64,000 nucleotides of DNA, from the NCBI GenBank assembly GCA_016748015.1, contig JAAOMT010000128.1, forward strand, positions 2,301,538 to 2,365,537, given 5' to 3'. The stretch comes from Geosiphon pyriformis uo1. Taxonomy: Eukaryota > Fungi > Glomeromycota. Below are positions 12,655 through 17,621 of this stretch, piece by piece (the stretch's first letter is position 1; every line of letters begins with the position of its first letter). The notes under the pieces were generated by a model. That model was not told the origin of the DNA. It did not search any database and saw only the letters and a list, made by a program, of their open reading frames with translations. A program made the position numbers and the translations under genes.

Positions 12655-14117
12655 CAGGTTGAAATCTGAGATAACAAATAGTAAAACCTGCGATGATCAG
12701 CCATGTAATGTAAAACCTGCGATAGATTGGATAGATTGGGTAAAACCTGCGATAAATTAGTAAAACCTGCAATAGGGTAAAAACCTGTAAACCCCGTGAT
12801 TGTATCAAGTGAGAAAATGAAATATATAAAATGTGTAAAGAAGGTAAAGATACATTATCTTTACTACCATAACATTATCACTAATGGGCGATTATGCTTT
12901 GTCTACTAGCTCTATTGAAACAAAAAAGGCCATTTGGCGCCCATTATTGCCAACTATTCGATGCATACAAGTGCCACTTATACAAGTACCCTCAGTGTTA
13001 GACTTATATATGTCTGATACGGTATCCCTAGGAGGTGGTAGTCTTATGCATAAGAAGTGGGTAAGAGATTATTATTTATATGAATTATACTTCTATACAA
13101 TAGTATTTTATTGAATATTAAGGTACGTGAAGGAGATGTAAAAGCCATTACACTTGTAAATGAAGATGCAAACAAAAATTCAAATTCAAATTTGGCATAC
13201 GTAGAATATCTTGGATGTTCCAATAGGGTATAAAATAAAGAATAATTTCTAATCAAAATTAAAAAGTATTAACTTTATCTTTATTTATAGAATGGGTGAT
13301 ACCGTATCAAAAAGACAAATCGACCAGCGACTGCCTCTGATCCTTGTCATCAATGTTACGGGAATTAGCACCATTAATGAAAAGAGGTCTCTTCAGAACA
13401 AAGATTTACCAGAAGAAATCAATTTTCCTAAAGGAAATCAAATTACAAAACAAAGGTAAATTTGAATTAAGTTTATCACTTACTGTATTTATTTATTAAT
13501 TTTTTAATATAGATATCGCCTGATGGGAGTTTCTTTTTGTAACGACATCCATCATATTGCCGATGTTCGTTTCGAAAATTTTAAAAATTCTGGCTGGTAT
13601 CAATACGATGGGTTGCAAAAAACCTACAAAGCAAGGGCAATGGCAATTGGAAGTCGCGTCCTCCTCCCAAAAGTGGTTATACAATGGATTTTGTCATCTA
13701 TGGAAAGATTTAAGTTTTTTGCAATAAAAACTGATCGTTATATGTAATAAAGAAGGACCTCTATTTTTAAGCTTACCTGTCTCAGTAATAACAGTATTAC
13801 TCGTTTGAATTTCCCATTCAAAGTTGTGCCACTTAGTTTGGTCGACTTTACAGTACCTTCAATTGGGTCTGCCCTCAAAAGGGGCCGTTGCTCTTAAAAA
13901 ATGTCTATTTATCGCAGATTTCACTTGATACAATCACGGGGTTTACAGGTTTTTACCCTATTGCAGGTTTTACTAATCTATCGCGGGTTTTACCCAATCT
14001 ATCCAATCTATCGCAGGTTTTACTAATCTATCGCAATCTATCCAATCTATCCAATCTATCACAGGTTTTACCAATCTATCGCAGGTTTTACTATTTGTTA
14101 TCTCAGATTTCACCCTG
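12655..14117. mobile_element. Non-autonomous long-TIR (foldback/hAT-like) DNA element carrying a gene fragment
   Basis: Left arm 12655-12812 (CAGGTTGAAATCTGAGATAACAAATAGTAAAACCTGCGAT...TGTATCAAGTGA) is the reverse complement of right arm 13921-14117 (...GTTATCTCAGATTTCACCCTG). Arms are built of GTAAAACCTGCGATAGATT sub-repeats. No transposase inside and no TSD found. Confidence 0.85.
12813..13713 (+). pseudogene. Intron-containing fragment of a ubiquitin-specific-protease-like (peptidase C19) gene, C-terminal half
   Basis: GT-AG introns 12844-12909, 13061-13122, 13228-13290 and 13456-13512. Spliced 3' part reads LPLILVIN...PEEINFP...RYRLMGVSFCNDIHHIADVRF...WYQYDG, then after a frameshift GYTMDFVIYGKI* (His-box-like layout). 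No Cys box, and phase conflicts upstream. Confidence 0.55.
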
Positions 14118-14208
14118 TTTATAAAAACTTGACCTTTCTACTTGTATATTTAACCCTGTCGTAATATTTTTATAAAAACTTGACCTTTCTACTTGTATAT
14201 TTAACCCT
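14118..14208 (+). repeat. 40-bp direct duplication with an 11-bp spacer
   Basis: tttataaaaacttgacctttctacttgtatatttaaccct at 14118-14157 and 14169-14208. Confidence 0.95.
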
Positions 14209-14218
14209 ATCCGTTACC

Positions 14219-16764
14219 ATGGCCAACTCATGGCACCCTTATTTTGACGAAACTGATGTAGAAGATTGGGATCTTTTACAATTTCATATAGAGTGGATCC
14301 TTGCTAATGAGGGGAATCCGGTAAACCTAGCTTACGATAAATCTTCAGACGCACTCACCAAAAGTCTCCGTGCGATTGTAAATAGTCTCTCAGACGATGA
14401 AAAAGTTACGAAACCAAAGAGCCTTTTGGCTGATATTAAAGCAAGTTTACGTTTAGTATGATTTTTTTTGAATGCTATATCATAATAAGAGTTTCTATAT
14501 GAAACAAATATTGGCTGTTATACGGACATAATTCAATGTTTCATCTATAACAAGGAGGCGTGGCTTTTAGCTCGTTGTAGTCTCTGGTTTCTATCAGTGA
14601 GAAGAAACTCTAAATGTCTGTTAGGCATCCATGGCTAGGAATTATGACTTTTAGCTGTTCTTCTGACGGGCTGTGGCTTGATATAACACTTGTTGCTATT
14701 GGTTCGCAGAAAATATTTTGTTCATTAAGATCAAACTAATAAAATTTTTTTAATGTTTGTTAGAATCAACGGAAAAAAGGCAACGATATAGATAAACTTT
14801 GGCTTACCATTGAAAACCAAATGTGTGCTCTTCAGATAGATAGAGAAAGAAAGAATTTGGAAATTCTTCAGGTAATAGTAATTAAGTGTATAAATATTTG
14901 AAATGAATTGTTCACAATTTTTATCTTATGATTGAATACAATGGATTAAGGTGATTACTCAAATTACAAGTCAAAGCCAATCATATGCATCTACATCGAA
15001 TGATAGTGCTCTTGCAAACTTGAAATTTACTGCAACTAAAGTAAATCAAGATCAAGAACTATTTGGGAGCAAGAAGGATGAAATCCAAACAGATTCTGAA
15101 AACAATCTGTTTTCAACATCTGAGGATGAGGTATGATAGTTCTCATTGAGAATATGTTTAATCATTAAAGTTCTACTTGTCCTAATGCTTTTTTCTGTAA
15201 ACAGTATGTATATTCACAGGAAATTTTAAACGAAGGTATAAAATTACCAGCTTCTAATAAACGAGGAAATGAAATTGAAAGAGACGATTCTGAACATAAA
15301 AAGGTAAACATTATAGGTGGTAAAAGTTACAAGAACGTAAAATCTCAAGTATATTTTCTATATTCAGGCAAGAGAGAGCCTCAAAAGTAATCTTCAACCA
15401 GAAAACAAAAGCTCTTCCTTCGAGTCTCTTCCCTCTGATGAGAATAACAAAGAACATGATGAAGACAATATGGAAATTAAATTTGATCTAACAAGTATTT
15501 CAACCGAATTACAACGTGAACCGATAGTCAAAGTATGACACATATTTAAATTTGATTCTTTTACTACATGTACCTTACAGTTTGCTGATATGGCGGTAGT
15601 ATCGTTTACAAGAACCTCTATCGATGAGACATTTACGATTAATTATTTTTTCCTTCTGTTTTTAGTGGGAAGTCGGCCACATCAATGTAACCAATCGGTT
15701 TCAGCAGTACCAGAAAGATACTGTTAAGAAGGCGGAAATAAAAGGGTTGAAATATAATAATATTTACGAACTCTTGTATGTATTCTGAAATATGTCACGT
15801 TTGACTGACAACAATTTTATTGAGCATTTTTTCTTATATTTAGAGCTTTATCGTCGATTATTGTCCTCTCCTCGCCATGTCCGTATCCTTCCTTGTTTAC
15901 AATTCAAGAGTGGAAGGAAGTTACAGAAGATAATCCTTATACTGTTCAAGAATCCTCACTTTCACCTGACATTTTGTCATCGCTTAATGAAGCATCGTTT
16001 AACCATTTTCTCGGCATGGACACATATATGGAAGGTGGAAAGTCAAAACTAAGTAGACTAGTTGCACGGTCGTTTAATGACTTGTAAGTAATATAATTTT
16101 ATAATATATACATGAGATTGTAGCCTATATAATTTTTTTTTACATCGTAGATATCACAATACTATGAATATTGCTCCGATAAAATTATCCGAAGAAGAAC
16201 ATTGTTTAAATTTTTTATATCCAATCGTTCGTCCATTTTTCGGTGGTGAAAAAGAATACGATTTAGTATTAAACCGTTCTAATGCGGGTTCCAAAAAAAG
16301 ACCGGACCTTTCATGTGTGGTAAATGGTATACCGATCTTGAATTCGGAATTTAAACCTTTNNNNNNNNNNNNNNNNNNNNTATATATATATATATTGATT
16401 TGTTTTCTGTGACAATTAGGCGATTTAATGGAATCTTACTCTATGGATCTTAAGTACGACGGTTTATACCGTTCCTGGCCATTCCTCACTACCAGGCTGG
16501 TAGTTGACAAGACTATGCTTCCGCTTGCAGGAGTTGCGATCCATCATTTGGTATCTTTAGAGGTATATGTCACATTTTCCTTGTTTATAATGAGAAATTT
16601 CACTTAATTTCATTTGCCCTTTACAATGACAGAAGCACGTTGAATCGATCGCAAAGGATTTTAAATATAGAAAAAGTTATAGTGGCAATACCACACCAAC
16701 CGAACAAATGTCTTTTATGCGTAAATTTCCAGACTCACCACAAGTAAGATTGTTACTTAAGTAA
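14219..16764 (+). CDS. Multi-exon Crinkler-like protein with N-terminal helical header and C-terminal PD-(D/E)xK restriction-endonuclease-fold domain
   Basis: Exons 14219-14440 (GC donor), 14764-14871, 14951-15130, 15205-15303, 15368-15532, 15666-15775, 15844-16083, 16151-gap, 16420-16562 and 16633-16764. All visible junctions are in phase with no stops. Motifs SEEEH...KRPDLS...NSEFKP and MDLKYDGLYR; ends PDSPQVRLLLK*. Part is hidden by the N gap. Confidence 0.85.
14488..14708 (+). ncRNA. Candidate structured intronic RNA element (four-way junction plus two hairpins), family unknown
   Basis: P1 14488-96/14603-11 (9 bp), P2 14499-506/14537-44, P3 14545-54/14571-80, P4 14581-602. Hairpin 14616-14671 and weaker hairpin 14672-14708. 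Helices abut and are rich in G-U pairs. Confidence 0.6.
16361..16380. other. Assembly gap next to a (TA)n run
   Basis: 20 N. Confidence 1.
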
Positions 16765-17621
16765 TAAAGGTCTGATATAGGCACTTCCTCTTGAGAAATA
16801 TAATTTCCATCAATCGCTATATCTCAATACACTTAATACGTTCAAATGGCTTGGACAAGTGCAGACCAATTAATTGCGAAAGTTTATAGTGTTTTATTTC
16901 GAATTTATATATAATGACATATTTTAATGTACCATGTTCGCATCACAATTATTTTCAAATGTGTATAAATCTGCATCGTTTTTATTGTAAGATATATTGA
17001 AAACGCGCGCGTGATTTTTTAACCCGCTACGAATGAATGTTTCCTTGAATAAACACAACTACTATCGCGAGGGACTTTTATTCCAATGTTCAGATAGGAT
17101 AATCGTCATTTTTTCGTCGCCACATTCGAAGAACAGATTATTCCAAAATAGTCGCCATGAACAAAATGAGATCAATTACGATATGCTATACCGCGGGGAG
17201 GGTTTGTTGTTGTCCCTCTAAGTGCTGGTTCTTTTATCGAGTTTTCTATCGCTTATTCGGGACCAAAGTCTAGATTTCTTATAATTTTTATTATAATCAT
17301 AATTGATCAGCATCAGAGAGAGCACAGACGATAGAAATTTTCGAGACCTTGTCCTCAAAAGATGACGTCTGTAACAAAGCAATAGTCCCAAGCGCTGCAC
17401 ATAGGTTTGTTACGTATCCAATGTGACAATAAATAGATTTACCAACGTGATAAAAACAAAGTAAAAAGCGCTCGAAGAAATGATAGAGGTAATGAAAAAA
17501 CATTGAAGACTAACTGTATGCTCTAAATTCAATGACTGAATTAATAAAACGCATACTGTAGGATTACATGCCTATGATAGAATTACAAAATGATAAAAAT
17601 CATATATAAGATTAACTGTAT

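Follow-up and report, generated by a model that had tools for sequence, protein, structure and literature searches.

The yeast ribosomal-protein genes RPL30, RPS14B and RPL22B autoregulate their splicing through a structured element in their own intron or first exon–intron region. Apart from yeast ribosomal-protein genes and the thiamine pyrophosphate (TPP) riboswitch, few conserved structured RNAs are known from spliceosomal introns. Here we analyse a structured element of the fungus Geosiphon pyriformis that occupies intron 1 of a nuclease-like gene and lies within a 64,000-nucleotide (nt) stretch of contig JAAOMT010000128.1 (the window; all unprefixed positions are counted from its first letter). 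Like the RPL30-type elements, it is a structured RNA near a weak donor in a first intron whose retention truncates the reading frame, and it is gene-specific and conserved with its gene. Unlike them, it consists not of a single kink-turn-like site but of tandem three-way junctions bearing four identical mini-hairpins, its host encodes a nuclease-fold protein rather than a ribosomal protein, and binding by the gene's own product is hypothetical here. The TPP riboswitch, likewise conserved and structured, controls alternative splicing from within fungal spliceosomal introns, but the present element has no match to its family (RF00059), shows no sign of a ligand pocket and has a repetitive architecture with a variable number of units. 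Introner-like introns and those derived from miniature inverted-repeat transposable elements (MITEs) also combine unusual length with strong predicted structure; they are multi-copy and reside in unrelated genes, whereas the window element occurs only in copies of one gene and at an old intron position. A literature search recovered no description of such an element, including for arbuscular-mycorrhizal fungi.

We tentatively interpret the element as a cis-acting, gene-specific structure of a weak-donor intron, retention of which blocks the full protein, and its identical hairpins as a putative binding platform. The element is modular as well as gene-specific, and its unusual signature is that four mini-hairpins stay identical amid divergence and change together. 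Should it control whether a protein of the restriction-endonuclease fold is made, it would add a new case in which a possibly harmful enzyme is regulated post-transcriptionally, and it would also offer a handle on the function of an unannotated, lineage-specific protein family of 149 clusters. The window copy itself, shaped by deletions, is of smaller value; both this genome and Rhizophagus irregularis contain sister elements that are better preserved.

Ancestral architecture and distribution of the element

The gene lies on the forward strand. Its first exon (14219–14440, 74 codons) is followed by intron 1 (14441–14763), a 323-nt GC–AG intron with donor GCAAGT, acceptor TTAG and stops in all frames. 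An earlier annotation of this DNA, made from its letters alone (the original prediction), had called this intron longer than the roughly 65–80 nt of most others, and this is borne out by the remaining introns with RNA joints, which span 57–133 nt and mostly 64–79 nt. Related sequences were gathered by an exon-1 protein search, which returned five clusters (P0001–P0005) that keep the open exon-1 frame at 71–84% identity, from the contigs of those clusters and by a metagenome scan. The set comprises contigs L013, L018, L019, L020, L023 and L024, together with L036 from the R. irregularis assembly GCA_903189815.1; L014–L017 are identical to L013 over the stretch read, and L021 and L022 duplicate the records L015 and L014, respectively.

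Every related contig, as well as both paralogous copies in the G. pyriformis genome (C600 and C718b, described below), carries 23 additional nt at about position 14565 and 11 additional nt at about 14669. Because the window copy groups with C600 and C718b, both differences are deletions in the window copy, which is thus a degraded, partly deleted instance of the element class. In the ancestral arrangement, the core consists in order of a closing helix (P1), hairpin H1, module A, hairpin H3, module B and a weak hairpin. Modules A and B are 65 nt each and form the same three-way junction (L018, L013, L023 and C600), comprising a 7-bp closing stem, a two-tier hairpin and a short hairpin. All four hairpin tips, two per module, are one and the same 11-mer mini-hairpin, GGCUUUUAGCU (GGCU-UUU-AGCU).

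In the window, both modules survive as remnants that are recognized by R1, a covariance model built from modules A and B. The module A remnant (14542–14583, + strand; 32.7 bits, E = 2.4e-6) has lost its first hairpin to the 23-nt deletion, leaving 4 nt for 27 model positions, and the module B remnant (14626–14679, + strand; 51.3 bits, E = 1.9e-11) has lost its second mini-hairpin to the 11-nt deletion, leaving 3 nt for 14 model positions. One motif copy remains in each: GGCTTTTAGCT in module A (14562–14572, + strand), which forms the GGCU-UUU-AGCU mini-hairpin, and GACTTTTAGCT in module B (14646–14656, + strand), where a G>A substitution disrupts one of the stem pairs of the mini-hairpin. The near-perfect four-way junction of the original prediction does form in the window but only in this doubly deleted copy, and since the relatives, C600 and C718b all keep the 23 and 11 nt, we regard it as a by-product of deletion.

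The arrangement extends beyond the immediate relatives. Two paralogues with 41–46% exon-1 identity, L008 (C640) and L009 (C669), share the layout of exon 1, long intron and exon 2, and the position of intron 1, common to paralogues at this level of protein identity, is old; a GC donor is common to the window clade, L023, L008 and L009. Intron 1 of L008 contains two locus-specific tandem units of ~66 nt, both matched end to end and in repeat register by R1 (16.2 and 14.0 bits; E = 0.012 and 0.048 in 13 kb), and adding these units yields six compensated pairs in a model-fitted alignment, which favours that result. Intron 1 of L009 (C669:850069–853278, minus strand) holds an array of ~1 kb with two alternating ~65-nt units and an N gap inside, unique within the genome. 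A further paralogue, C637, carries at C637:722601–722701 a two-module element whose four hairpins share one loop sequence, UUGUCGG within GUUGUCGGU, a primary sequence different from the GGCUUUUAGCU of the window clade. R1 does not reach the C637 or L009 elements and gave nothing convincing at the distant family loci L027 and L028, and the folding energies of the L008 and L009 introns are not significant (z = −1.4 and −1.1). What recurs is a first intron between the exon-1 and exon-2 types that carries tandem, closed-stem hairpin modules of ~65 nt, truncated in the window. We regard hairpin-module intron 1 as a trait of the gene family, with the shared layout confirmed for C637 only. The proposal of an undescribed RNA-plus-nuclease module accordingly holds in part: a structured RNA on the sense strand, absent from Rfam, sits in intron 1, travels with the gene across species and has a sister layout in a paralogue, but the window copy from which it was proposed is degraded.

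Within the genome, the element is confined to this gene. A DNA search of the 128-Mb assembly matched the intron only to itself, to C600:5398–5761 and to C718:2377072–2377525, and the paired motif and significant R1 matches fall at the same three loci, all copies of this gene. MITE, introner and satellite origins were rejected on these DNA, motif and covariance-model searches, so that the check for a MITE or known family outside the gene family came out in favour of a gene-specific element. Tandem Repeats Finder reported no array inside intron 1 of the window, and a 24-nt, 75% complementary pair (I1; 14494–14517 and 14707–14730) has neither a flanking duplication nor other copies. Marginal R1 matches elsewhere (C640:238259, C554 and C729) were dismissed as chance because no family exons lie nearby. 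An Rfam 15 cmscan of positions 13500–17500 at E up to 10 gave four chance-level matches, none of them in 14441–14763, in agreement with the earlier statement that U1/U11, TPP, hammerhead and snoRNA features are absent.

Both additional copies are fragmentary gene duplicates with stops in exon 1. The C600 copy (C600:5398–5898; L002, L007) comprises intron 1 flanked by the 3′ half of exon 1 and by 20 nt of exon 2, and is transcribed; its contig has a k-mer depth of 152.6 in RNA run X1, compared with 58 for the contig of the parent gene. C718b (C718:2376860–2377994; L003, L006), ~60 kb downstream of the gene and outside the window, is a rearranged duplicate in which exon 1 has three stops, intron 1 keeps intact modules and shows a partial tandem duplication, and exons 2–7 are missing, with an exon 8 copy of 100% identity almost directly behind the intron.

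Conservation and folding compared with chance

The core is well conserved: among the window, L013 and L018, the three pairwise identities are 91.3%, 94.1% and 91.3%, compared with 84–92% for introns 2–3 and 82–95% for exons 1–4 of the same pairs, whose synonymous sites differ by 14–21%. Between modules A and B, none of 22 motif positions differ, whereas 15 of 43 other positions do (35%; P about 8e-5 at that rate). Where the loops have changed, they have done so together: L013 carries T>G at unit position 5 in all four units, L020 has the same change in its one visible unit, and L023 has T>C at unit position 6 in units 2 and 4. Because four identical transversions cannot be independent, we consider these loop changes concerted. 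Pairing is also maintained between the modules, as all 10 stem differences between A and B still pair and 97.4% of cells are paired across L018, L013, L023, C600 and L024. Three pairs are compensated on both sides (C-G/U-A, A-U/G-C and A-U/G-C; slid-partner controls, 0–2), and the A/B covariation score exceeds all 500 shuffles.

The minimum-energy fold of the window copy (14488–14708) reproduces the originally described succession of a closing helix, AGAGTTTCT/AGAAACTCT, round three hairpins, a 56-nt hairpin and a weak abutting hairpin. P1 pairs 14488–14496 with 14603–14611 (+ strand; inverted repeat I10, 9 of 9 complementary), is found by fold, inverted repeat and relatives alike, and in related contigs has undergone C>U and A>G changes that leave the pairs as G-U. 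Within it lie H1 (14499–14544, + strand; ATGAAAC...GTTTCAT, inverted repeat I4), one pair of which shifts from A-U through G-U to G-C in L020/L013, and H3 (14581–14600, + strand), of which 12 nt are deleted in L023. The 56-nt hairpin (14616–14671, + strand) is one alternative fold of the module B region, which in L018 and L023 folds instead as a three-way junction, and the weak third hairpin occupies 14672–14708 (+ strand). When the full intron is folded, the donor-proximal flank pairs with the region 5′ of the branch point and encloses the core.

Against dinucleotide shuffles, the sense fold of 14488–14708 is better than chance but only moderately so (−59.0 kcal/mol versus −50.5 ± 4.3, z = −1.98, 7 of 200 shuffles as good; a separate shuffle set gave z = −2.15), and the antisense fold is at chance (−32.9 versus −33.0 kcal/mol). 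The parts differ: the four-way junction is partly strand-symmetric (z = −2.9 sense, −1.98 antisense), the 56-nt hairpin is sense-specific (−18.1 kcal/mol; z = −3.0 sense, +1.5 antisense), and the last hairpin is not significant (−6.6 kcal/mol, z = −0.83). Ancestral-type copies gave sense z values of −3.97 (C600), −1.94 (L013), −2.81 (L018), −2.36 (L023) and −2.34 (L024), with antisense values between 0.0 and −1.7 and the sense strand always better. The fold is thus real, if less exceptional than first described.

One argument for selection on the sense RNA, an excess of G-U pairs over A-C mismatches, did not survive this comparison. The window fold has 20 G-U pairs among 82, and shuffles of the same G+T-rich strand already have 14.1 ± 2.6 among 68, just as the sense–antisense gap of 17 kcal/mol is already there in the shuffles (about −50 versus −33). 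Shuffling alone yields 14 G-U pairs, and folding programs never score A-C as a pair. The G-U surplus and the strand asymmetry thus stem mostly from G+T-rich composition, and the contrast with A-C largely from this composition and from the pairing rules of such programs.

RNA evidence and competing explanations

Several observations identify GCAAGT as the correct donor of intron 1. Its counterparts in related contigs are GTAAGT (L013), GTAAAT (L018 and L019) and GCGAGT (L023), the end of exon 1 being homologous to the relatives' donor site, and the R. irregularis gene model P0069 (CAB4480388.1) splices at this donor, joining ...ADIK to DQRKK. If intron 1 is left unspliced, the exon-1 frame stops 7 codons past the donor in the window and ~5 codons past it in the relatives, so removal or retention of the intron decides whether the nuclease-like protein is produced.

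RNA evidence comes from assembled cDNA contigs of one public run (X1); in such contigs, complete retention, a start inside the intron and cleavage at the borders of the core look alike. One contig of 1336 nt matches the window at 100% identity and lacks introns 2–8 (GT..AG) but continues unbroken from exon 2 back to 14702, so that the last 62 nt of intron 1 (14702–14763, + strand) are present in RNA and continuous with exon 2. A second contig, whose 10 differences match the C600 copy, extends from exon 1 across the donor and reaches 14502 in intron 1. No exon 1–exon 2 joint occurs in the X1 contigs, in which eight other introns are spliced; intron 1 is not handled like the other introns in RNA. 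The splicing switch of the original prediction fits this absence of intron 1 splicing, although the fit draws on the contigs of a single run. The contig end at 14702 immediately follows position 14701, at which the window and the expressed paralogue differ, and may be an assembly break, since such a difference would break a de Bruijn contig. The cDNA contig L035, from another species, also begins within the 3′ portion of its intron 1, where the homologous sequence reads TTTGCAG. Contigs of two species thus start at homologous TT(C/T)GCAG just 3′ of the core, and this shared start could reflect transcription initiation, RNA processing or a broken assembly.

Most likely, the structured core acts in cis on the pre-mRNA. 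Keeping intron 1 would then lead to an early stop and removing it would allow the nuclease-like protein to be made, with the array of identical hairpins as the probable platform for a factor that sets the splice choice; the array may also zip the long intron together. A bolder extension, which we think distinctly unlikely, is a self-addressed code: the intron 1 of each family member would have a private four-loop array (GGCUUUUAGCU here, GUUGUCGGU in C637) that co-evolves with its own protein, and the protein would bind its own pre-mRNA or matching DNA and shut off its own splicing, thereby restraining a potentially harmful nuclease. If this were true, the concerted change of four loops in one lineage would be a trace of loop–protein co-evolution.

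A cis-acting role has to be weighed against a neutral origin, in which a duplication- and slippage-prone intron gives rise to hairpins from self-complementary units and to G-U pairs from a G+T-rich strand, and the fold is unselected. We judge this somewhat unlikely, but a number of results count against selection and several of them fit such an origin. Folding energy is only about two standard deviations better than chance, and the G-U excess is mostly compositional. The number of units varies: besides the 23 and 11 nt lost in the window, L036, which has an intact 530-aa gene model, lacks exactly one 23-nt unit of module B relative to L018 (L036:1923–1964), so unit-sized deletions recur and mini-hairpin number differs between closely similar R. 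irregularis-type sequences. Unrelated tandem arrays occupy the same intron of the paralogues (~1 kb in L009, two units in L008), C718b has its partial tandem duplication, and homology of the L008 units to modules A and B is probable rather than proven because a sequence-only profile (nhmmer) was not significant. Among nine related introns, ortholog covariation did not exceed controls (2 double-sided pairs versus 1.0 ± 0.7; 115 of 500 shuffles as high). Terminal substitutions broke 19 pairs of the consensus fold versus 24.4 expected (p = 0.058, not significant), with similar ratios in control regions (0.77–0.97), and the pseudogene copy L024, with a stop in exon 1 and its donor destroyed, still folds and keeps the element almost as well. 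A pairwise pair-breaking test against the reference fold appeared far stronger (sense, 41 versus 103 random; antisense, 77 versus 101; control regions, ratio near 1.0), but we rejected it as proof of selection because mutations of the reference lineage are hidden in the reference's own loops, which inflates the result for any inherited structure. In addition, the X1 contigs cover neither 14503–14701 nor the window's own exon 1, and full retention is not demonstrated by them. What a neutral origin does not readily accommodate is the complete identity of the motif between old duplicate modules that differ at a third of their other positions, one transversion in all four units of one lineage, preserved pairing at all 10 A/B stem differences, three of them by double change, a core less diverged than the synonymous sites of the same gene, and the same layout in a paralogue with different sequence. 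The evidence for selection on the element is therefore mixed; conservation in homologous introns, for which the original prediction had called, was found in the 91–94% identity of the core and in A/B compensation but not in covariation among orthologs.

Three further explanations account for parts of the same data. The four 11-bp motifs could act at the DNA level, as transcription-factor sites of an internal promoter or enhancer from which a shorter transcript would start just 3′ of the core and encode a protein without exon 1. The start of the window contig at 14702 with its own exon 1 uncovered, the matching start of the cDNA contig from another species, motifs that are kept as sequence and change in concert, and an in-frame ATG in exon 2 would all suit this view; compensated stem pairs beside the motifs are unexpected for protein-binding DNA sites, however, the 14702 end coincides with the paralogue difference at 14701, and the paralogue-derived contig runs from exon 1 into the intron, and we hold such a promoter to be unlikely. 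It is less probable still that the core is excised as a separate stable RNA, whether a small-RNA precursor, a scaffold or guide for the nuclease, or an antitoxin-like restraint. The contigs reach 14502 and resume at 14702, leaving uncovered 199 nt that are almost exactly the core, and the 3′ edge recurs in a second species, but contigs cannot show ends or absence, Rfam holds no ribozyme, snoRNA, snRNA or miRNA family that matches, and nothing links the RNA to the protein. Of the earlier suggestions of an antitoxin or a guide or scaffold RNA, accordingly, neither has anything speaking for it. Finally, the helices might serve purely as an architectural zipper that brings donor and branch point effectively closer together, so that a 323-nt intron can be spliced in a genome with introns of 60–130 nt, and involve no regulation. 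The enclosure of the core by pairing of the donor-proximal flank with the region 5′ of the branch point agrees with this, as does the tolerance of P1 in intact relatives for wobble-compatible changes only, yet four identical loops and their concerted change are left unexplained, as is the apparent non-splicing in RNA, and we regard this as the most improbable of the explanations considered.

The host protein and other features of the gene

Exons of the window gene were searched individually. Pfam returned only sub-threshold HSDR_N matches (19.0 and 16.9 bits against a cut-off of 25.1), and a Foldseek search of the protein model against PDB gave no matches. An exhaustive VIA-align comparison of the C-terminal domain model (predicted local distance difference test score, pLDDT, 89.6) placed BpuSI first (Z = 10.6), followed by DrdV (8.4), HsdR (7.8) and EcoRI (7.0), and below these many restriction enzymes, BbvCI, NucC and Can2. 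The D...(D/E)-x-K motif, RPD(L/F)SC ... LNSE(I/F/V)KP in exon 8 of the window, is nearly invariant in 28 family members. Description of the host protein as nuclease-like is thus justified as a fold, that of PD-(D/E)xK restriction endonucleases, and its activity is putative; the original assignment of a PD-(D/E)xK nuclease gene stands in this sense, with the fold supported by structure search and catalytic motif and the activity predicted only. The family, whose 149 clusters were defined at 50% identity and include R. irregularis and Cetraspora pellucida, has no annotation and is Glomeromycotina-specific.

Exon 2 (14764–14871, + strand), the 3′ end of which was taken from an RNA joint (14869/14949), is homologous to exon 2 of L008 and L009. 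The putative branch point ACTAAT, previously placed at about 14735, was confirmed at 14735–14740 (+ strand) by reading the sequence and is kept in L013, L018, L023 and L024. An alternative possible donor, GTATGA, lies at 14456 (+ strand). Intron 1 does not resemble a U12-type intron (donor RTATCCTT, branch site TCCTTAAC), as its donor is GCAAGT (or GTATGA) and its branch region AAACTAATA. A coding or retained micro-exon within intron 1 was rejected, with stops in all three frames and ortholog indels that are not multiples of three.

Hairpin H3 contains an internal, consensus-like cryptic donor at 14597–14602, which reads GTGAGA in the window and GTGAGT in relatives. The database model P0018 uses this internal GTGAGT and translates module A in frame as ...GSVAFSYSSDGLLARCSLWFLS..., which looks like a prediction artefact.

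Directly 5′ of the start codon, positions 13958–14199 are dense in tandem repeats with periods of 9, 20, 30 and 48 nt, and a 25-nt unit, TATAAAAACTTGACCTTTCTACTTG, is present in 3.2 copies whose end lies 20 nt short of the ATG; neither L013 nor L018 aligns with this region (42% identity). Further downstream, a run of 20 Ns (16362–16381) interrupts exon 8 just past the E-x-K motif, and the cDNA contig jumps there from 16360 to 16418, which leaves the boundary between exon 8 and the intron that follows unreadable at that point. At 16740–16956, a low-depth RNA contig (10.8) skips 215 nt with non-canonical CA..TT ends, across the region of the stop codon.

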